Of a stretch of DNA of 64,000 nt, positions 5,282-37,256 are shown one piece after another. A model generated the notes under the pieces. The model made no database searches. It was not told the DNA's origin and saw only the letters and a list, made by a program, of their open reading frames with translations. How positions within the stretch are numbered: position 1 is the first letter of the stretch; each line of letters starts with the position of its first letter. The position numbers were made by a program, and so were the translations under genes. Location: sequence record PQ464590.1; one strand, written 5' to 3'.

Positions 5282-5312
5282 AAAAAAAGCCCCGAAATGT
5301 TATTCAGGGCTT
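5282..5312 (-). terminator. Intrinsic terminator after tail tube gene
   Basis: AAGCCCTGAA-loop-TTCGGGGCTT followed by a U-run on the minus strand. Confidence 0.8.
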
Positions 5313-20009: not shown

Positions 20010-21263
20010 TTAGTCCTTCTCTTTGAGTAGGTATTTGTTGTTGATTACTTTGAAGCTGACGATACGACCATCAACCAAATCAACACTCTTGTACACGTCA
20101 CCTTCAGCCTGTGGTGCATTGATGGATTTATGCTCCGCACTCGCAAGTGCTGATTTGATGTCAGTGTGCACATCGAAGAACTTGATAATTTCGCCTTGTG
20201 GGGCTAGTTGCAAGTCTAGATCAGCCGCTACTTCTTGGAATTCTGCATCCGTCAGCAAAGTACGTTTGTCAATATCATAGATACGGAACGTGAATAGCTG
20301 GTGCTTGTCGAAACCTTCAATGTTACCCTGGATACCCGGACCCATTACTTCACTTTGAATAGCAAGCTGACGATCATTCTCAACACAGTACTCGTACAGG
20401 CGACGTGGGAGGTCAGTTTCTAGTACTGGAGTCCAGAAGTGAGAAGTTGGATCGTACTTCAGAGAGTGGTTACGAGAAGCAACAACAATCTGACCTTGTT
20501 CGTAGTTGAACGGATATGGTTTCACTTCAACTACTTTCAGTTCTTGGGCTTCTTCATCCCACTCTTTTACTTCATCATCCAGCTTGTGCAGGAAGAAGTC
20601 TGGGTTCATCAGGCACGCAATAGTGTGGCTTGAACCTTCCATTTTCAGAGACTTACGGAAAGCTACACCTTTCATGGTCTGGGAGAACTTGCCGAAGATG
20701 TTCTGTACACGGTCTTCGTCAGTCTTAGGAACCACGATAGGGAACTCACCACCAGTTTTAGCACGGGAACCTGCACCACCATTCTTCTCGGATGGACGCT
20801 CGTACTTGATTACATCGATGAAGTTCTCAATGCCGAAGCGAGAGTCTTCCAGCGATGCCAGTACTGCATCGCGTGCAGCGGACTGATAGCTATCAGGGTG
20901 ATTACCGTTAGCTTCGTCAATCGCTTCCCATGTGCTCTCAAACATCGTTACAGGCAGTGCTAGACCTTGGGAGATCACACCCCGCAGTTTGATGGTACGC
21001 AGACGGCAGCGTTCTTTACCTTCATCATCCAGCTTAGTACCGCGTGCCGCAAGGAATGCAAATTCTTTACGATTTGCTGGCACAAAGGAGTCGATTTCAA
21101 AGAAGACACATTTCTGGCCTACTTCAAATTCACCCTTCTTCACGACTACCTGCCAACCATCAACGGTAGCAGCTACGATTTGGTCTGCACCTTCGATTGC
21201 ATCAATTGCATCGATAGTACGTACGGTAACGAGTTTACGGCCTTCGGTTACTAGTTCGGTCAT
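20010..21263 (-). CDS. RNA ligase, Rnl2-like (DRB0094 family) with N-terminal OB-like domain
   Basis: RKLVTVRTI..I..IEGAD.I, VFFEIDS, motif I KMEGSS, IQSE.MGPGIQGN, EG.VYK and SFKVINNKYLL. Confidence 0.9.
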   Translation of the reverse strand: MTELVTEGRKLVTVRTIDAIDAIEGADQIVAATVDGWQVVVKKGEFEVGQKCVFFEIDSFVPANRKEFAFLAARGTKLDDEGKERCRLRTIKLRGVISQGLALPVTMFESTWEAIDEANGNHPDSYQSAARDAVLASLEDSRFGIENFIDVIKYERPSEKNGGAGSRAKTGGEFPIVVPKTDEDRVQNIFGKFSQTMKGVAFRKSLKMEGSSHTIACLMNPDFFLHKLDDEVKEWDEEAQELKVVEVKPYPFNYEQGQIVVASRNHSLKYDPTSHFWTPVLETDLPRRLYEYCVENDRQLAIQSEVMGPGIQGNIEGFDKHQLFTFRIYDIDKRTLLTDAEFQEVAADLDLQLAPQGEIIKFFDVHTDIKSALASAEHKSINAPQAEGDVYKSVDLVDGRIVSFKVINNKYLLKEKD

Positions 21264-30522: not shown

Positions 30523-30843
30523 TTACCTTTTCTTCAGAATTACGGTACGGTCCTTTTGTAGATCCAAAAGGAGTTTAACTAATGCATCATGGCGTTGTGC
30601 ACATACATCATATACAGTTTGCCATTTAGTCATTGTGTGTAGTGCTTCTTCGCCATTGTATACTTTCTTACCATCCTTGTCAATAACATATTTTTCAGGG
30701 ATTGGTGTATCAGCAGTACAACGTTCCAACAGGATAGAATCGGATTCAATCACTGGTGGATCGTTAACTACAACAGCCTTTTCTGCACAGCCCGTTAAGA
30801 ATACCACAGTACTGAACATTATTGCAAGGAATATTTTTTTCAT
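30523..30843 (-). CDS. Outer-membrane spanin (Rz1-like lipoprotein)
   Basis: Lipobox LTGC, P-rich linker, LLERC...P and W...YDVCA.RH. Confidence 0.75.
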   Translation of the reverse strand: MKKIFLAIMFSTVVFLTGCAEKAVVVNDPPVIESDSILLERCTADTPIPEKYVIDKDGKKVYNGEEALHTMTKWQTVYDVCAQRHDALVKLLLDLQKDRTVILKKR

Positions 30844-31199
30844 TTCATACCCCTTGCAAGTCTTGAGTTCTCACGCATGATTTTAAGTGCGTCAACACCT
30901 TTTTCTTCCATACAGTACTGATAGTATATCTCTTTCTCTTTTTCAACAATAAATGGTATCTTTTCTTTGATAACCTTAAACTGTTGACCTTCTAAGTACT
31001 CTTTTGTTTCTTTGTAGTTTTGGATGTTTTGATCCTTTATATCTTTCATTGCTGTGCGTACTTCTTGCTGTACAGTTTTAGCAATGTTTTGGTCATAACC
31101 ATCTTTGAGTGTTTTTAACCACCAACCAGACGAGAATGCCCCACCGACTAGAAAGACTACTAACAGTACTTTCCAGTATTTTTCTAGTAATACAAGCAT
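30840..31199 (-). CDS. Inner-membrane spanin (Rz-like)
   Basis: Single N-terminal TM, helical periplasmic domain with a Cys, ATGA overlap with the o-spanin. Confidence 0.7.
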   Translation of the reverse strand: MLVLLEKYWKVLLVVFLVGGAFSSGWWLKTLKDGYDQNIAKTVQQEVRTAMKDIKDQNIQNYKETKEYLEGQQFKVIKEKIPFIVEKEKEIYYQYCMEEKGVDALKIMRENSRLARGMK

Positions 31200-31227
31200 A
31201 TTACCCTCCATAGCATTAATCTAATAT

Positions 31228-31242: not shown

Positions 31243-31267
31243 AAAAAACCCAGCATTAAGCTGGGTT
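31243..31267 (-). terminator. Intrinsic terminator
   Basis: AACCCAGC/GCTGGGTT hairpin plus U-run. Confidence 0.75.
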
Positions 31268-31870
31268 GTCTTTGCGGATATTCTCAATGTGCTTAGCAAT
31301 CGCATCGAAGAGGTTATAGCGTTGGATACTGTTGATACCTACGCACGCACCTGTGATATCTTCGAGGATAGATTCCAGTACTTCAGAATCTACTTCATGA
31401 ACAAGTTTATCTTGTGTCTTCGTCACATCTGGACGAATACCTAATAGTTCATTTAGTGTGCAATCTTGATTGAATGTTGCGGTCTGATAACCGTGGTGTT
31501 CATACTTGATAATATCAAATATTTGCGAACCAACCATATCAGAAAGAGTACTGAAGAAGTTTTCAATCATGTCTTCGTTGGCGTTTAGAGTACGCAGAAC
31601 ATGAGCAACACATTCAGTACCGTCGAGGTTTTCAATGTAATGCATTTCTTCGAAAATTGGATAGCATGTTTCTACCAGTGCAATGCGAAGTTCTTCCAAC
31701 AGTTTATCGTTCTCGGACATATTAGCATACTTATCCTGCATCTCATCGAGGATAATACGCATTTCTTGGAATGCGAGATTGCTGTACTCACCATTCAAAA
31801 TCTGGATTTGCATTTCACGAATTAGATTATCCATTTCGACCGAACCGTGTTCTGTTTCTTTGAAGAGCAT
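31256..31870 (-). CDS. Hypothetical acidic protein
   Basis: 204-aa ORF. Confidence 0.7.
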   Translation of the reverse strand: MLFKETEHGSVEMDNLIREMQIQILNGEYSNLAFQEMRIILDEMQDKYANMSENDKLLEELRIALVETCYPIFEEMHYIENLDGTECVAHVLRTLNANEDMIENFFSTLSDMVGSQIFDIIKYEHHGYQTATFNQDCTLNELLGIRPDVTKTQDKLVHEVDSEVLESILEDITGACVGINSIQRYNLFDAIAKHIENIRKDNPA

Positions 31871-32446
31871 TTATTTCCCCTTATTATGTGCGATACGTTC
31901 TTTGAATCCTGATGTTACACGTATCAGAACACGTTGACAAGTCCGATCTAAGATTGGACAGCTATGAAGTACTTTGGAGGTGAATTTATGCACGCTTTCA
32001 GTGGGTGCAACAGCTTCAATAAGAACTTCATTATCAAGAACATTTTGTACTGAAGTATAATCCTTCGTATTGATTGGATTCATTACGAATGATGTACCAA
32101 TTACAGTACTGTAAATTAGATGTGTCTCTGGTTCAAAAGTATCATGAATGTCATTGGTGCAATCCAAGTGGTATCCATAAATTCCAGAACCTGTATCACC
32201 TTCTTTTAGTGAACGAACCTTGTAATCTATGACAATACTACGGTCATCATAGTCACGCATCTTTTCCATCATCATTTCAATCAAAGGCTGTAAAGAAGGA
32301 TCAGCTTTCTTTAGAACCTTTGTGGGATTTTCATATTTTAGTACTAAATCGGGGATAATAATGCTTGGAGCATCAAAATGAAACAGGTTCATCTCAATGC
32401 TCCCGACCGGATTTAGACTGTTAGTAACCGCAGTCGTAGTCGCCAT
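31871..32446 (-). CDS. 2-oxoglutarate/Fe(II) dioxygenase-fold protein
   Basis: HxD (YHLD), distal His (LHSCP) and R.LIRV; true start may be MNLFHF. Confidence 0.6.
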   Translation of the reverse strand: MATTTAVTNSLNPVGSIEMNLFHFDAPSIIIPDLVLKYENPTKVLKKADPSLQPLIEMMMEKMRDYDDRSIVIDYKVRSLKEGDTGSGIYGYHLDCTNDIHDTFEPETHLIYSTVIGTSFVMNPINTKDYTSVQNVLDNEVLIEAVAPTESVHKFTSKVLHSCPILDRTCQRVLIRVTSGFKERIAHNKGK

Positions 32447-32930
32447 TTGTAATTTTTACTTCTCCGTCTTCGAGGAATTCAATCTCTAGTTTCCAGTTCG
32501 TACCAAGTACTTCTTCCAGGATGTAAGAATATTTCTTACTGAACGCATCTTCTAAATTGCGAGCCTGTTCACGAGTTAGACCAGCATTGATATCAAGAAT
32601 ACGACTAGGTGGATTGTCATAATCTAGATCATAGTCAAAACGCTCATGATACTCAATTACGTTAGTGTACTTGTGATCTGCACGGTCATTTTCAATGAAT
32701 ACAACTGTACGGTGAACACATTCTTCTCCGTCATTGAATTCGGGTGTGAATCCTAGTACAAAGATGTGAGATAGACCTTCAGTACCTTCCTTCTGTAGTT
32801 CTTTCATCAGAAGTGGGAGTGCCTTTCTAGCACACTCCGCTTTAGCCGTTTGAATCTTATCTTCACGAGCACTAATGAGAAGTTCAATCTTGGTTAGATT
32901 TGAATACGAAGTTTTAGTACCCACAGTCAT
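32421..32930 (-). CDS. YDCGY-family paralogue 3
   Basis: GFTPEFNDGEECVH...GTNW...YDCGY-stop. Confidence 0.8.
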   Translation of the reverse strand: MTVGTKTSYSNLTKIELLISAREDKIQTAKAECARKALPLLMKELQKEGTEGLSHIFVLGFTPEFNDGEECVHRTVVFIENDRADHKYTNVIEYHERFDYDLDYDNPPSRILDINAGLTREQARNLEDAFSKKYSYILEEVLGTNWKLEIEFLEDGEVKITNGDYDCGY

Positions 32931-33306
32931 AATCCTCCTGAATCACTACAATTTCACCATTTTCACGGTACGCAACAACTTTGTAGTCAGTACCGTAAAC
33001 GCGTTCGATTAGTTCTTCGTCCACCAGCATATAGACTTCATTTTCGGTGTCTTCATCCATTTCGTTCTCTGGTAGTTCACCACTGTCATCGATGAAATCA
33101 TAGTAAGAAAAATCCACATCAGAACTATGTTCACATGCTTCACCGTCATTCCATACTGGAGTACTACCTAGTACTGCGACACCATTGAAAGTAGGGAATG
33201 CATCAAAGATGCTTTCGAACATTTCTTGGATCATCTCTTCACCATGTGCAGAGACTAGTGCGTTCGCAGCTTGTGCGTGCTCTTTGAATTTGCTGTAGTT
33301 TGTCAT
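32914..33306 (-). CDS. YDCGY-family paralogue 2
   Basis: GSTPVWNDGEACEH...GTDY...YDCGY-stop. Confidence 0.8.
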   Translation of the reverse strand: MTNYSKFKEHAQAANALVSAHGEEMIQEMFESIFDAFPTFNGVAVLGSTPVWNDGEACEHSSDVDFSYYDFIDDSGELPENEMDEDTENEVYMLVDEELIERVYGTDYKVVAYRENGEIVVIQEDYDCGY

Positions 33307-33307
33307 A

Positions 33308-33814
33308 TTAGTACCCACAGTCGTAGTATTCGTTGGTCACAGTTTTGATAGAACCATCTGCCATACGTACTGCAAGAATCTGCCAATCAGTACCCATTAC
33401 TTCATATAGAAGGTTTTCAATACCTTCTAGATGTGAGTCAACTTCACGATACACATCGTACTCGAAGTCACCGAGATCTAGACCATCTAGTGCATCTTCT
33501 ACATCTAGACCTTTTTCTTCTAGCTCTAGATCCATTGCTTCTTCACTTTCGAAACCGAGTAGTAGAGCAGTCATTTCTTCAGAATCACGAACATGGTCTT
33601 TTAGTTCATCTGATTCAATGATTGAGTACTGGGTGTGAGTACATGGATCACCATCGTTGAATCCAGGAGTATAGCCATTGATTAGAATAGCTTTGATGCC
33701 TGGATTCACAGAGAATGCACCAGCTAGTGCATCAGCAAAGATTTCATCTTTGTGTGCAGCAACGAAAGCGGAAACCGCTTTTTGTAGTTTTTTGTATTCT
33801 TGTAGTTTAGACAT
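33308..33814 (-). CDS. YDCGY-family paralogue 1
   Basis: GYTPGFNDGDPCTH...GTDW...YDCGY-stop; RBS AAGGA. Confidence 0.8.
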   Translation of the reverse strand: MSKLQEYKKLQKAVSAFVAAHKDEIFADALAGAFSVNPGIKAILINGYTPGFNDGDPCTHTQYSIIESDELKDHVRDSEEMTALLLGFESEEAMDLELEEKGLDVEDALDGLDLGDFEYDVYREVDSHLEGIENLLYEVMGTDWQILAVRMADGSIKTVTNEYYDCGY

Positions 33815-33815
33815 A

Positions 33816-35063
33816 TTATTTTCCTTTTCCGTACCATTGCATTTCGCGTAGTTCAATTAGAACCTTAGCGGCTAGTTTAGGGTTCGCCTTATTAGGCAGT
33901 ACTGAATTCTTCAAATGCACATCTCGTAATTCAGCAGATTTGTGATTGAAGTAATTCATTAGTTCTTCATATGACCAAGAACCGTTTCGAATAGCTAGTA
34001 GCTCATCCGCATCTGGTCGTTTCACATGAACTTCACCAGTGAGTAGTGCTTCTTCAGCAGTTCTCAACAAGCGTACTACGTGCATCGCATGTTTAGTATC
34101 GTATCCGTACTGCGATTCCAGTACTTTACGAGCATCATTGCGATTCTCTTTCCATTTGTGATAACTCTTCCGGTTATCAGAATTCTCGTCGTACTCTTTC
34201 TTGTTGAATTTCACAATCAAAATAGGAGCACGCTTGATTTCTTCAACTGAACGATTATCAGTGTCAATTTTGTGGATACTACCATCGTTGTTGATAGTTT
34301 GTGAATCCGGTGCAGGAACAACACCAAAGATGTTCTCACCGTACGGGATTAGCTCATAATCATGCTTGAAGTTCAGGATGTTGAAATCTCGATCCAGAAG
34401 CTTTTCGGGTAAGTAGTTATGAACGAGTTTTACGAAGTGATATTGCTTCAGTGGCTTAGCAGAAACTAATTGCAGTGAAGTATCACGCATGAATTTCTCA
34501 AAGTCAATATGCATTTTCACAAAAATATTTTTACCACGAGTCGTATTGATACGCTGAACTAGGTAATCGGGGAACGTTTCTTCCATCCAATTGATCGTGT
34601 TCTGATACGGATATTCATCGAAGATTTCATTCAATCGACGTTCCGCAATACGCTCTTTGTCCATCCAACCATGATGGTTCTGCATACGATGTGCCTGGTT
34701 ATAAGCATAACCACTGTACGTGTACGCAATCTTATTACTAAGTAGCTGCTGATTGTACGAACGAAGATAATCGTACATTTCTGAACGTTCTACAATTTCA
34801 GAATCATCAACCCATAGTGTTTCTAGGATGTTCGGGTTCCCATCTAGATACAATTTCATGAACTTACTTAGCTCATAGAACTTAGTATCTTCTTCCTTTG
34901 CATCAGATGCTTCGCCAACATTGAACCACGGAGTAAGAACGAATTCTTTATCCGCTACAAAAATACCTCGATAATCTACATCAGAGGTTGGAGTACTGGT
35001 CCCATAAGCATGGGAGCCAGCCAAGTGCTTTACAATAGTCTGCTCTAAAAAATTATGATTCAT
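33816..35063 (-). CDS. Pol-beta superfamily nucleotidyltransferase (RlaP/Nuc-transf-like) with central insertion
   Basis: AGSHAYGTSTPTSDVDYRGIF, GNPNILETL, GYDTKHAMHVVRLL and L.IRNG.W.YEE. Confidence 0.85.
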   Translation of the reverse strand: MNHNFLEQTIVKHLAGSHAYGTSTPTSDVDYRGIFVADKEFVLTPWFNVGEASDAKEEDTKFYELSKFMKLYLDGNPNILETLWVDDSEIVERSEMYDYLRSYNQQLLSNKIAYTYSGYAYNQAHRMQNHHGWMDKERIAERRLNEIFDEYPYQNTINWMEETFPDYLVQRINTTRGKNIFVKMHIDFEKFMRDTSLQLVSAKPLKQYHFVKLVHNYLPEKLLDRDFNILNFKHDYELIPYGENIFGVVPAPDSQTINNDGSIHKIDTDNRSVEEIKRAPILIVKFNKKEYDENSDNRKSYHKWKENRNDARKVLESQYGYDTKHAMHVVRLLRTAEEALLTGEVHVKRPDADELLAIRNGSWSYEELMNYFNHKSAELRDVHLKNSVLPNKANPKLAAKVLIELREMQWYGKGK

Positions 35064-35514
35064 AGTACTCCCACATTAGATCCGAAAATACTTCTAACCA
35101 TACACGTTTGATATGTTCAGTAAGTACTTCATCCCCGTTATTTTTGGATTCTAGTTTTAGATGTGTGTGCGTTCCTTCATGATCCATATGAATAAGTTTC
35201 ACTAATGTAAGTTGAGTTTGTGCCAGATAACCTAAACCGTAAAGACCTGCCATACGACTAGAAATTTCATCGAACACATTTTCCAGAAACTCATCACCAT
35301 CATCAACAGTACAGAAGATGATATAGAATGAGTTCTCACCAGCATCACTGGAATGACCTTCACATGACCATCGTGGAACAACATTCTCCAGACACGGAGA
35401 AGTCTTGAAGAAATCAAGAACATCTTTCATTTTGTCATCAACAGTTGTTGTATTCAGTGCAATAAATTGACTTTTTACGTCATCAAATAATTCACGAGTA
35501 ACTTGAACTTTCAT
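35053..35514 (-). CDS. Hypothetical protein with SCEGH motif
   Basis: 153-aa ORF. Confidence 0.65.
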   Translation of the reverse strand: MKVQVTRELFDDVKSQFIALNTTTVDDKMKDVLDFFKTSPCLENVVPRWSCEGHSSDAGENSFYIIFCTVDDGDEFLENVFDEISSRMAGLYGLGYLAQTQLTLVKLIHMDHEGTHTHLKLESKNNGDEVLTEHIKRVWLEVFSDLMWEYYES

Positions 35515-35515
35515 T

Positions 35516-35911
35516 TTAGTTCCTTAGATATACAGTTAGATGGCATAAGAAGCCATTGTAGTACTTCATGAAGTCTTCATAAAGTGTACGGTAATCTTCA
35601 TAACACATCACTAAATCAGTGACTGTATCAGCTTGAAAGAACGCTTCTTCAGTACTGAGATTCAGTACTTCAGCATTCATTCCATTTTCTAAAATCTTAG
35701 TAAATTCAATACCACGTGTAGAGATCTCTATTAGGAAGAAATCGCCGGAAGTATCTTTGGGACCAACAATGTTAATCCCAGAACCCATTTCGAATGAGTA
35801 CTCAAATTCAACAATATCGTTATCATCGAGTCCGTAAAAGAATCCTTCGGAGTTCACTCGCTTACGGTTATTCATATCTTTTATGAGGTCATAAATGTCA
35901 GTTGGTGTCAT
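35516..35911 (-). CDS. EEEFFQ-motif paralogue
   Basis: LSTEEAFFQADT. Confidence 0.7.
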   Translation of the reverse strand: MTPTDIYDLIKDMNNRKRVNSEGFFYGLDDNDIVEFEYSFEMGSGINIVGPKDTSGDFFLIEISTRGIEFTKILENGMNAEVLNLSTEEAFFQADTVTDLVMCYEDYRTLYEDFMKYYNGFLCHLTVYLRN

Positions 35912-36215
35912 TTTCCATCATTTCCACGATAGCGTTGAAGACCTCAATGATAACATCACCATGACATACCAATGGAGCACATGAACAACCGATTGTTTTA
36001 CCGGATAAGTCCAAGAAGTCTTGAACGGTCAGAACCCCAGATTCGAGCTTATCATAAAGACTTTGACGGTACATTTCAACAACTATCTGTCGTGTGTGAC
36101 CTTTTGATAAATCAATGGGAAATTCATTGCCCCATTTCGTCCCACGCCCGATATACACATCGAACGTCGAACATTTGTGTCTATTCACCAGTACTGGTGT
36201 GATGTATTTTACCAC
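35898..36215 (-). CDS. DUF4326-family protein
   Basis: DVYIGRGTKWGNEF and GKTIGCSCAPLVCHGDV. Confidence 0.85.
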   Translation of the reverse strand: MVKYITPVLVNRHKCSTFDVYIGRGTKWGNEFPIDLSKGHTRQIVVEMYRQSLYDKLESGVLTVQDFLDLSGKTIGCSCAPLVCHGDVIIEVFNAIVEMMENDTN

Positions 36216-36601
36216 ATGACATCCATTAGGATACCATCATATCCAGGGAAAATACAAGAACATTCTTGTTCCATAAATTCCTCAAAAGAATCATATGACT
36301 CGTACCCGTGCTTTTCGCAAAAGGTCTTCAGGAAGTACAGTGCCTTTTGGTGAGTATTTTCTGGTTCTCCAGCCCATACAGGAGCTAGATCAGAATCGTC
36401 ACCCTGGAAGAACCGTTCGAATACAAACATAGAATCGTTACGGAAAATATCACAATGGTGATTACAGAACATGTCGTGGATTTCCTTACGGACATCCTCA
36501 CCTCCATGATTCTTCTTGATGTGATTGTACAAATCAATGACATTTACTTGAATGTACTTCTTCTCATTAGGCTTATGGTGATGTGTATAGTAATCGTACA
36601 T
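36209..36601 (-). CDS. Hypothetical protein
   Basis: Start moved to MYDYYT (RBS AAGGA). Confidence 0.65.
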   Translation of the reverse strand: MYDYYTHHHKPNEKKYIQVNVIDLYNHIKKNHGGEDVRKEIHDMFCNHHCDIFRNDSMFVFERFFQGDDSDLAPVWAGEPENTHQKALYFLKTFCEKHGYESYDSFEEFMEQECSCIFPGYDGILMDVMW

Positions 36602-36602
36602 A

Positions 36603-37190
36603 CTAATCCTTATATAAATTAGCGATTTGATCTTGGAATTCGTAAGCTGCCTGGACTTCTGCAATCTTATTACATTCATTGTTCTTATAATCAATAGAAC
36701 AACACATGTAGTAGAATAGCTTGGAAATATGAATATCAGTACTGAACTTTACCGGAGCAACAATTGGCTCACCACTAATGAACTTATCTTTCTCAACTTC
36801 AACATTCACTAAGTTGCATTTGAATGCGATGTTGCGTTCATCATCAATGGCGTACCACGCTTGTAAGCCCGAATCGTTTGGAACGCGAACTTCCCGCCGC
36901 ATAATATTATGCATATCATGATAGTACTCGATGGACGTTTTATAGTCCAACGGTGATGGTCGTGACGAACAAGTTGAACGACTGATCCTGAACTCCCCCT
37001 TCGCGATACGCATGAAGACGTTCCGTTGAATTTCGGTCATAGTACTGACAATGTACTTCGTTAGAATGATTTCCTTTCGTAGAATATCACCCTTAGCGAA
37101 GTCAATAATTTCATGCATCTTTTTTATGGCGAAAGGATTACCGGAGTACAGGATTAATCCTATCATGTTATTGTAACTTTTCTTTTCCAT
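36603..37190 (-). CDS. Hypothetical protein
   Basis: Start MEKKSY with RBS AGGAGG. Confidence 0.7.
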   Translation of the reverse strand: MEKKSYNNMIGLILYSGNPFAIKKMHEIIDFAKGDILRKEIILTKYIVSTMTEIQRNVFMRIAKGEFRISRSTCSSRPSPLDYKTSIEYYHDMHNIMRREVRVPNDSGLQAWYAIDDERNIAFKCNLVNVEVEKDKFISGEPIVAPVKFSTDIHISKLFYYMCCSIDYKNNECNKIAEVQAAYEFQDQIANLYKD

Positions 37191-37217
37191 TTCCCCTCCT
37201 GCTTCGAGATTCCACTG

Positions 37218-37245
37218 ATTATAGCACAAAAAAAGAGACTGTCAA
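37218..37245 (-). promoter_or_regulatory. Sigma70-type promoter
   Basis: TTGACA-16 nt-TATAAT; the -35 box lies inside the upstream terminator hairpin. Confidence 0.7.
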
Positions 37246-37256
37246 GTGACAGTCTC
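37228..37256 (-). terminator. Intrinsic terminator after the tail-fibre genes
   Basis: GAGACTGTCA/TGACAGTCTC hairpin plus U7. Confidence 0.85.

Follow-up and report, generated by a model that had tools for sequence, protein, structure and literature searches.

Tail-bearing acidic proteins of a Rak2-like jumbo phage are encoded next to a small 2-oxoglutarate oxygenase across distant phages

Erwinia phage Hallingskeid, a 366-kb Rak2-like jumbo phage, carries on its minus strand a row of five genes, for an RlaP-family nucleotidyltransferase, three acidic paralogues (Y1 to Y3) and a 191-residue oxygenase (DX), and the question they raise is which of them belong together and to what end. We addressed it in the window, a 64,000-nucleotide stretch of record PQ464590.1. 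An initial annotation, made from the letters of the window, had seen in the five genes a single unit, possibly an undescribed modification or repair system; all five reading frames are indeed present on the minus strand, where it had placed them.

The five genes make up the middle part of a phage operon of eleven genes. The operon is likely to start at a sigma-70-type promoter (37218..37245, minus strand), a pattern match only, which agrees with the consensus (TTGACA, 16 nt, TATAAT, with TG) at 12 of 12 positions and immediately follows the terminator-like hairpin belonging to the 910-aa gene upstream; its likely end is an intrinsic-terminator-like hairpin with T run (31247..31267, minus strand), also a pattern match only. 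Two hypothetical genes come first (36603..37229, without a Pfam match and with the GenBank start slightly further in; 36209..36601), followed on the same strand by a gene for a DUF4326 protein (35898..36215; PF14216, E=4e-19), a family predicted to process ribose-linked phosphates (PMC9503650), by one for a hypothetical protein kept in part of the Rak2-like phages (35516..35911; phrog_22376) and by one for a hypothetical acidic protein (35053..35514; phrog_7413) that overlaps the nucleotidyltransferase start by 11 nt. The last gene of the operon (31256..31870) specifies an acidic 204-aa protein whose relatives were not detected, and abuts DX with a spacer of 0. The genes between are as tightly packed: 1 nt separates the nucleotidyltransferase gene from Y1 and Y1 from Y2, Y2 and Y3 overlap by 17 nt, and Y3 and DX by 26 nt. 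The start codon of Y3 sits within the Tyr-Asp codons of the preceding tail, as does that of DX in many relatives.

Y1 (33308..33814, 168 aa; phrog_10375), Y2 (32914..33306, 130 aa; predicted to be folded, pLDDT 92.6) and Y3 (32421..32930, 169 aa) show pairwise identities of 33-37%. They are acidic, as first described (pI 4.05-4.73), all three contain the motifs G-x-T-P-x-(F/W)-N-D-G-x-x-C-x-H and G-T-(D/N)-(W/Y), and each terminates in Y-D-C-G-Y immediately before the stop codon. The 15-mer reported as common to two of them, GACTGTGGGTACTAA, has two exact copies, one at the end of each of Y1 and Y2; a third copy with 2 mismatches lies at the end of Y3 (chance expectation 0.18). Y3 and the last copies of all Rak2-like phages are positional orthologues, the clade that they form having an SH-aLRT of 94. 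Since the paralogues are old and position-specific, each copy appears to have been retained by selection.

The superfamily to which they belong is large, at 5312 clusters with E<=0.001, and lies outside any characterised family: it has no Pfam entry and no solved structure. Its C-terminal motif behaves as an end-anchored essential element across thousands of relatives. About 135 of 152 representatives (at <=50% identity) terminate in Y-x-C-G-[Y/H/W], far beyond chance, and because the chain stops right after the motif the free carboxylate probably matters. The sole strictly invariant tail residue is Gly; the residue preceding it is Cys in 195 of 214 tails and Pro in 9 of 214, and in about 9% of members Cys is swapped for Pro, Ala, Val, Ser, Arg or Met. 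The loop Cys, for its part, never varies, and the loop His is also unaltered where the tail Cys is replaced; loop Pro50 is invariant in Y, including the branch without DX, and the acidic linker region is variable. Copy number ranges from 1 to 4 per locus, with a single copy in 39 of 55 loci.

What is conserved is not a set of five genes but one or more tail-bearing acidic proteins followed by the oxygenase. DX lies within 1.5 kb, usually as the next gene, in 42 of 47 distinct loci, these being loci in which every Y has a CGY-type tail and in which there is enough downstream DNA to judge; they include Agrobacterium and Ancylobacter prophages and a Planctomycetota MAG, which otherwise have no flanking genes in common with the window. 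The adjacency is near-obligate and runs both ways: when five divergent DX proteins were picked by sequence-record length alone, a protein ending in DCGY was encoded immediately upstream of all five. The paralogue and oxygenase genes stay linked in very distant phages, so that on this link the initial interpretation, which unlinked genes would have counted against, withstands its own test; no description of the pair was found in the literature searched. Seven CGY-tail loci have DUF6915 and lack DX, and remoter DX-like oxygenases of Mycobacterium phage Rey, Bacillus phage G and Gordonia phage Skog have no adjoining Y. The wider oxygenase clade thus needs no Y, and the DX substrate might be RNA, a small molecule or a host protein.

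The nucleotidyltransferase (33816..35063, 415 aa), of the Pol-beta type, is RlaP-like, as proposed, scoring 64.2 bits with Pfam RlaP (PF10127) against a cut-off of 23, and E=5e-73 with phrog_388; GS and D-V-D, of the pattern GS...DxD, are seen in its translation, and the Pfam model matches residues 14-131 only. It stands outside the conserved Y-DX core. That the five genes nevertheless form one system, in which the paralogues receive nucleotides from the nucleotidyltransferase (on their terminal Tyr, for instance) in one pathway with the oxygenase, would have a precedent in MntA/HepT, where a nucleotidyltransferase drives Tyr AMPylation of its partner protein, and the order nucleotidyltransferase, Y array, DX is constant in all sampled Rak2-like phages. 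RlaP is, however, linked only in those phages and at one Nocardia locus, and with this one exception is absent within 5 kb of Y-DX pairs outside them; 728 phage records contain RlaP homologues, most of them with no Y, and 33 contain the paralogues. Of the macromolecules of E. coli, RNA is also reported to be the only one that RlaP extends, at its 3' ends (bioRxiv 10.64898/2025.12.29.696909), so that nucleotidylation of the paralogues is unlikely and a five-gene system built on it very improbable. Enzymes of this family (P. fluorescens RlaP, phage T4 NrdC.11) put one or two nucleotides onto damaged RNA 3' ends, and they are frequent in jumbo phages together with RNA ligases (bioRxiv 10.64898/2025.12.29.696909; PMC7824862); the biochemistry of RlaP is known for Pseudomonas enzymes only (bioRxiv 10.64898/2025.12.29.696909). 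Unlike in that setting, no RNA ligase adjoins here, those of the phage being 11 kb and ~49 kb off. Of the initial interpretation, then, the end motif, the oxygenase, the uncharacterised paralogues and the Y-DX link are borne out; the five-gene unit and the nucleotidylated paralogues are not.

DX (31871..32446; phrog_21561) was called a dioxygenase from the outset, and its AF2 model (pLDDT 92.2), a double-stranded beta-helix, together with its catalytic residues indeed marks it as a small Fe(II)/2-oxoglutarate (2OG) oxygenase. The iron triad (H93-x-D95, H161) does not vary among 20 homologues with identities as low as 20%, and neither do R172 and R176; the catalytic residues are also found in the distant relatives from phages Rey and G. 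R172, which follows H161 by 11 positions, and R176-x-T178 show little or no variation; judged from position only, the R172/R176 region may bind the C5 carboxylate of 2-oxoglutarate. When 48,161 PDB chains were scanned without bias, the best 50 matches were all 2OG/Fe oxygenases (Z up to 9.9), a second structural comparison gave PHD2 as the best (Z 10.5, rmsd 3.2 Å, 148 residues aligned), and Foldseek, like the second look and the wide scan, put 2OG oxygenases in all its top places. By sequence, 20 DX members gave 0 Pfam matches at E<=1, including to 2OG-FeII_Oxy/PhyH-type families, and nothing in the PDB matched; DX is therefore a new sequence family within the 2OG superfamily.

As to the kind of oxygenase, the structural scores tie, with PHD-type protein hydroxylases at Z 9.4-9.7 and the small-molecule oxygenases EvdO2 and SnoK at Z 9.8-9.9. 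The PHD/P4H enzymes (human PHD2, Dictyostelium PHD, Pseudomonas putida P4H) have the lowest rmsd and highest identity to DX (Z 9.4-10.5; 3.2-3.4 Å over 141-148 residues; 12-14%). They share with it a single-domain double-stranded beta-helix, the HxD...H triad and a basic residue ~10 after the distal His, and they modify particular partner proteins at a loop or turn; Pseudomonas putida P4H hydroxylates EF-Tu. In contrast to their targets, the putative Y turn contains Cys in 91% of members, Pro being confined to ~4%, and in contrast to the enzymes themselves DX has no sequence-level match to any Pfam 2OG family. An AlkB-type demethylase was considered for DX and rejected, AlkB, ALKBH3, ALKBH6 and ALKBH7 scoring Z 7.3-7.8, ~2 below the top tier; ABH2 ranks high in Foldseek's own list only.

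A sister branch of the Y superfamily has the tail Y-x-H-D, is without DX and has DUF6915 as its partner, which adjoins the sister-branch gene in 26 of 27 judgeable loci. Both branches have the loop TPx[FW]NDGxxC; in the sister branch Phe replaces the loop His in 33 of 34 cases, and gene order is opposite to that of Y-then-DX. DUF6915 retains many invariant His, Asp and Glu residues; as a candidate HD phosphohydrolase it was rejected, at an hhalign probability of 0.7% with the HD proteins that neighbour Y-DX. Tail and partner go together, CGY with DX and YxHD with DUF6915, mostly through one old split: on the Y tree tail type switches ~5 times and DX presence ~4 times, and an independent-pairs test is powerless. 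Two new families with partner rules are defined in this way, CGY tail plus oxygenase and YxHD tail plus DUF6915.

The genes around Y-DX recur in unrelated loci: Thg1, HD phosphohydrolase, RlaP, T4 Rnl1-like ligase and CCA-adding enzyme, and further PP-loop ATPase, PNK-like kinase, Macro domain and metallophosphoesterase. The Y-less DX-like gene of Rey adjoins RtcB, tRNA genes and phosphoesterases, and that of phage G NAD-salvage genes and KptA. Such repeated RNA-end repair enzymes fit the undescribed modification or repair role suggested initially, and point, by guilt by association within accessory-gene islands, to a link of Y-DX with RNA repair.

The explanation that we favour, with a probability of about 0.4, is that DX recognises the free C-terminal tail of Y, which would be its substrate or its regulator, in RNA-repair islands of phages. 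The proposed module comprises one to four acidic Y proteins (phrog_10375) and then DX (phrog_21561), usually translationally coupled. Y would have to keep its terminal carboxylate free and to have aromatic-x-Cys(or Pro)-Gly-aromatic as its last residues; this tail, as the element recognised, would be inserted into the active-site cleft of DX, where its terminal aromatic residue, or else the Cys/Pro of an X-Pro-Gly-like turn, would undergo oxidation. Y proteins would then be dedicated protein substrates, their activity switched by the modification, and the module would act inside a phage gene set for RNA-end repair and tRNA maintenance that here may include the upstream-encoded RlaP, adding nucleotides to damaged RNA 3' ends. 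If DX does modify, or is controlled by, the Y tail, the pair would be a new kind of protein-directed 2OG oxygenase system and would give a first handle on a very large phage protein family of >5000 sequence clusters; its steady placement with RNA-end repair suggests a missing component in the upkeep of translation by large phages under host tRNA attack.

The target-variant anti-defence proteins of the initial annotation are a live rival to tail recognition. Y would consist of inhibitor or 'immunity'-type decoys, each paralogue neutralising a different host nuclease, such as a tRNA-cleaving defence effector, while DX acts separately or activates Y; the array would be a counter-defence battery beside the RNA-repair enzymes. 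Strong acidity, a variable acidic linker region, RNA-repair neighbours and tandem arrays of 2-4 paralogues with ~30% identity and positional orthology all suit this, as does the sole structural match of Y above noise, to EsaG/DUF600, the immunity protein of the nuclease toxin EsaD: both are small acidic alpha+beta proteins, and esaG-type genes form tandem arrays of diverged paralogues. The fold resemblance is weak but unique, the Z of 5.6 for Y2 (rmsd 4.5 Å, 98 of 130 residues) being below the level where a fold match is trustworthy, yet the only one at Z>=5 and ~2 Z above the next; EsaG is also the top Foldseek match (E 0.09). Y differs, however, in having no adjoining toxin gene and no sequence similarity, with DUF600 matched in Pfam by 0 of 45 Y members and no immunity family matched by sequence, and an invariant loop with end-anchored tail is not described for EsaG. 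We regard decoys as doubtful, in that they leave the near-obligate DX partner and the motif-terminated chain unexplained and fit poorly with the 39 single-copy loci.

That one superfamily pairs with two unrelated enzymes, the tail type following the partner, is better suited to a generic regulatory module than to a specific substrate. Y might thus regulate its enzyme as a pseudo-substrate or antitoxin-like inhibitor, its tail plugging the DX or DUF6915 active site until a signal comes, and a small acidic protein, then an enzyme, translationally coupled, recalls antitoxin-toxin pairs; but up to four inhibitor genes per enzyme would be odd, gene order is opposite with DUF6915, and DX is neither basic nor toxin-like and gives no hint of toxicity, which makes such regulation unlikely. 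Alternatively, the target of DX could be tRNA or other RNA, which this oxygenase would repair or modify, with Y as its accessory, much as archease, a small acidic helper encoded beside a metal-dependent RNA-repair enzyme, assists the RtcB ligase. The neighbours of the Y-less genes in Rey and phage G speak for this, as do the Thg1, RlaP, HD and CCA-adding enzyme genes beside Y-DX and the presence of ABH2, an AlkB homologue, among the first Foldseek matches of DX; it is made improbable by the AlkB family scoring ~2 Z lower (7.4-7.8) than protein hydroxylases and small-molecule oxygenases, by the acidity of Y, which would not itself bind RNA, and by the lack of any fold or sequence resemblance found between Y and archease, the partner of Y being moreover an oxygenase. 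Cys/His and the terminal Cys had initially suggested a metal site. Y could be a metal-binding protein or metallochaperone handing metal to its metalloenzyme partner, with a site made up of the loop Cys, which never changes, a His often present two positions later and the tail Cys (His-Asp in the sister branch). Such classic ligands, Cys-x-His in the loop and Cys or His-Asp in the tail, are conserved in both branches, Y is strongly acidic, DX requires Fe(II) and DUF6915 has its many invariant His, Asp and Glu. The metal site is weakened, and a metallochaperone appears quite improbable, because the tail Cys is replaced in ~9% of members while loop Cys and His stay unchanged; the Phe for loop His in the sister branch also counts against it, and tandem paralogues would be unaccounted for.

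Invariant residues at the very C-terminus, encoded beside the gene of an oxidative tailoring enzyme, are familiar from mycofactocin (MftA/MftC) and PQQ (PqqA/PqqE). In a further reading, the Y proteins would be a new class whose maturation consists in the oxidation of the free C-terminal residue or turn, by DX or in the sister branch by DUF6915; the altered terminus, for instance an aldehyde or an aromatic residue that has been hydroxylated or decarboxylated, would arm Y as an inhibitor of host RNA-targeting defence nucleases; we consider this rather unlikely, though if true it would be a widespread, undescribed principle of enzyme-activated counter-defence in phages. Y-DX differs from the mycofactocin and PQQ precursor-plus-oxidase pairs in being without peptidase, transporter or recognition-element genes and in its enzyme, DX being a 2OG oxygenase and MftC and PqqE radical-SAM enzymes; MftA and PqqA, moreover, are short peptides, whereas Y is a confidently folded protein of 130-180 aa.

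The cassette occupies the minus strand of a region that matches Erwinia phage Hallingskeid (PQ464590; 366 kb), a Rak2-like jumbo phage, at 100% identity, window position 1 corresponding to position 248001 of the GenBank record on which our genome-wide searches were run. All five open reading frames of the initial annotation were recovered on that strand, without recourse to an alternative genetic code: a nucleotidyltransferase gene (NTase), three tandem acidic paralogues (Y1, Y2 and Y3) and a small oxygenase-like gene (DX). GenBank names the first "nucleotidyltransferase" and each of the others "hypothetical protein". They are tightly packed, their junctions being 1-nt spacers or overlaps of 11-26 nt. 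The ATG of the downstream gene is often made from the Tyr-Asp codons of the preceding Y tail (window 32421-32446 and 32914-32930, and loci L141-L145), so that a short stretch is dual-coding, and a 17-nt tail/start overlap recurs in very distant loci, e.g. L141. The GenBank start of DX, at 32392 (XPP58816.1, 173 aa), appears to be 18 codons short; ATG 32446 is preferable, since the 18 N-terminal residues that it adds are kept from genus to genus and are modelled as structured with high confidence.

Eleven co-oriented genes are flanked by a sigma-70-type promoter of perfect consensus (37218-37245) and a terminator-like hairpin (31247-31267), both recognized by pattern match only. The promoter overlaps a terminator hairpin with a 9-bp stem (37218-37256), directly 3' of a 910-aa gene, forming a compact terminator/promoter junction. 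The operon of Y and DX also contains a DUF4326 gene; DUF4326 is predicted to process ribose-linked phosphate (PMC9503650).

The three Y proteins are 33-37% identical in pairwise comparison and acidic as described (pI 4.05, 4.14 and 4.73), and each carries the shared loop G-x-T-P-x-(F/W)-N-D-G-x-x-C-x-H, the strand G-T-(D/N)-(W/Y) and the exact YDCGY-stop end attributed to them. Y1 and Y2 each end in an exact copy of the 15-mer said to be common to two paralogues, and Y3 in a copy with two mismatches; its chance expectation is 0.18. Searched with a Y profile, 1.84 billion cluster representatives yielded 5312 relatives at E<=0.001, of which 2269 also reach E<=1e-10; almost all are 130-190 aa long, and Y-x-C-G-[Y/H/W] is the C-terminus of about 135 of the 152 best. 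One 5994-aa protein (P0055) was matched by the Y profile in 21 stretches and is probably an acidic repeat rather than a true relative. The initial annotation had allowed for a match to a characterised family: none was found in Pfam, where a scan of 45 Y members gave nothing consistent, and the two corresponding PHROG families (phrog_10375 and phrog_9564) are of unknown function. Sequence comparison with the PDB gave no usable match, the ESM Atlas only unnamed viral clusters and BFVD only family members; long open reading frames scanned for fusions of Y with DUF6915, DX or another domain contained none. Y represents a new and large superfamily of proteins whose motif is anchored at the chain end. 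The predicted structure of Y2 (pLDDT 92.6) opens at the N-terminus with a long helix and a strand, after which the invariant loop leads into a second strand; a variable acidic linker comes next, then a pair of helices and a beta-hairpin, and the six residues of the final tail lie outside regular secondary structure.

DX matches nothing in Pfam or the PDB by sequence, a Pfam scan of 20 members gave nothing consistent, and the ESM Atlas yielded a weak PhyH lead besides unnamed viral clusters. Its model (pLDDT 92) is a double-stranded beta-helix whose leading structural matches are all Fe(II)/2OG oxygenases. The HxD...H...R dioxygenase signature proposed earlier is borne out by this fold and by the invariance of H93-x-D95, H161, R172 and R176. 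Within the 2OG oxygenases DX therefore constitutes a sequence family that is new. As to its substrate class, in an unbiased structural scan PHD-type protein prolyl hydroxylases (Z 9.4-9.7, rmsd about 3.3 Å) tied with small-molecule oxygenases (Z 9.8-9.9), and the AlkB family lay about 2 Z below the top scorers.

How far the genes travel together was judged with HMMs built for this analysis (the DX model iterated twice), duplicates being removed before counting; scanning metagenomes for the loop pattern contributed 80 further loci. Among 55 distinct loci in which all Y copies have the Y-x-C-G-Y kind of tail (CGY-type), 47 include enough downstream DNA to be judged: DX was present in 42, DUF6915 in 7 and RlaP in 16. 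DX lies within 1.5 kb of the Y array and is normally the very next gene. Where it was missing from CGY-type loci, none was found elsewhere on the same contigs (records 13-49% complete). The reverse test gave the same picture—all five divergent DX proteins drawn from a word-index search have a ...DCGY protein encoded directly upstream, overlapping or nearly so. Y and DX are a near-obligate gene pair, with the caveat that yet more remote DX-like oxygenases, described below, lack a Y neighbour. The claim of a conserved five-gene unit was not supported: the order RlaP, two to four Y genes, DX is kept in all Rak2-like phages, but elsewhere RlaP drops out while Y followed by DX persists, for instance in unrelated viral contigs, in a Planctomycetota MAG, and in Agrobacterium rosae and Ancylobacter rudongensis prophages.

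A sister branch of Y (phrog_9564) ends in Y-x-H-D and almost always directly follows a gene for DUF6915 (PF21866, phrog_8143), as in loci L101, L102, L134, L035 and about 22 others. Of 37 distinct loci with no CGY-type tail (mostly Y-x-H-D), 27 have enough upstream DNA to be judged; 26 carry DUF6915, usually immediately upstream of Y, and one carries DX. DUF6915 and YxHD-type Y are a second undescribed pair. Many His, Asp and Glu residues of DUF6915 are invariant, and by sequence the family is without a relative in the PDB; the proposal that it is a minimal HD domain was rejected (hhalign probability 0.7%). A further unannotated family of about 130 aa (c13; L020, L109, L121, L126, L129 and L131) is found repeatedly beside DUF6915-Y pairs, and two copies of it stand upstream of Thg1 in L020. 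These counts are to be read with the searches in mind: the viral-contig scan was biased to the CGY type because the tail was among its search patterns, while the scans of genomes and metagenomes relied solely on the loop common to both types. On the Y tree, moreover, there are only about five changes of tail type and about four of DX presence, leaving just 2-5 independent contrasts; the match between tail and partner therefore goes back for the most part to a single ancient split and does not count as repeated co-evolution.

The NTase assignment stood: the protein matches Pfam RlaP above threshold and phrog_388 along its full length, with no usable match in the PDB by sequence. RlaP enzymes of Pseudomonas extend damaged RNAs at the 3'-OH by one or two nucleotides and, of the E. 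coli macromolecules, labelled RNA alone; T4 NrdC.11 is a member of the family (bioRxiv 10.64898/2025.12.29.696909). A survey that found RlaP to be the most prevalent end-restoring NTase of jumbo phages mentions neither Y proteins nor the DX oxygenase (PMC7824862).

Other neighbours of Y-DX or Y-DUF6915, in loci unrelated to one another, are Thg1 (L019, L020, L084, L097, L142), an HD-type phosphohydrolase (phrog_990; L023, L071, L078, L093), a T4 Rnl1-like RNA ligase (L032), a CCA-adding enzyme (L145), a PNK-like kinase (L142), a Macro domain (L141) and metallophosphoesterases (L113, L144); RlaP itself accompanies them in Rak2-like phages and in Nocardia (L034). Hallingskeid was searched for Thg1 and DUF6915 and encodes neither. 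On three unrelated contigs (L141, L144, L145) a PP-loop ATPase gene is followed by Y, by DX and then by the gene of a 487-aa DUF2828 + DUF7788 (vWA-like) protein, a type that may resemble Ro/TROVE RNA-binding modules. The RNA-repair theme extends to distant DX-like proteins of about 227 aa with an intact HxD...H...R and no Y gene nearby: that of Mycobacterium phage Rey (gp139, L146) is downstream of an RtcB ligase by three short genes and a phosphatase gene, with tRNA genes near, and that of Bacillus phage G (gp274, L147) is surrounded by NUDIX, NAD-salvage (nicotinamidase, NAPRTase) and KptA genes; the third is in Gordonia phage Skog (gp119, L148). The link to RNA repair is guilt by association within accessory-gene islands, yet it recurs across lineages with little else in common.

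The most economical mechanism would have the partner enzyme read the free C-terminal tail of Y, which in the pair with DX may be the substrate. We tentatively favour such an enzyme-substrate relation, at a probability of about 0.4, because the Y chain must end at its motif, because the last residue is in every case an aromatic whose C-beta can be oxidised (Tyr, His or Trp), and because the Cys/Pro-Gly in front of it is similar to the X-Pro-Gly turn on which prolyl hydroxylases act. Immediately ahead of the tail Gly, CGY-type members have Cys in 195 cases, Pro in 9 and one of Ala, Val, Ser, Arg and Met in 10.

Y may instead be an inhibitor array directed at host nucleases: the sole match above noise in its structural scan was EsaG/DUF600 (Z 5.6), an immunity protein against a nuclease toxin, a resemblance between folds that we treat as a lead and not a finding. 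It could also be a metal carrier: across CGY-type members the loop Cys does not vary, and 187 of 213 CGY-type proteins have His two residues further on. Against a metal site, the YxHD type has Phe at that position in 33 of 34. Y might also be a regulator of its partner enzyme, or an accessory factor for an RNA-directed oxygenase. Least likely is the NTase-centred five-gene system of the initial annotation, RlaP accompanying only part of the Y-DX loci. The 2OG oxygenases are a known superfamily, and that an oxygenase may have a protein partner of its own is likewise a known idea; the Y partner family, its tail rule and the Y-DX pairing are new, and the literature searched mentions neither the YDCGY motif, nor DUF6915 in the context of Y, nor such a phage oxygenase, with Thg1 or otherwise.

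In the tree, Y copies of Rak2-like phages cluster by position in the array: one clade unites the last copies, Y3 included (SH-aLRT 94), and a second one the middle copies (99). The duplications therefore predate the split of the Rak2-like genera, each copy having been retained.

Directly downstream of the operon lies a spanin pair (30523-31211), an Rz-like i-spanin with a lipoprotein-type o-spanin, followed by an HNH endonuclease in an order shared with K64-1 and CBB. An Rnl2-type RNA ligase gene lies on the same strand about 11 kb downstream of the cassette (20043-20645), and an Rnl1-type ligase of Hallingskeid is encoded outside the window, at record positions 331953-332579.
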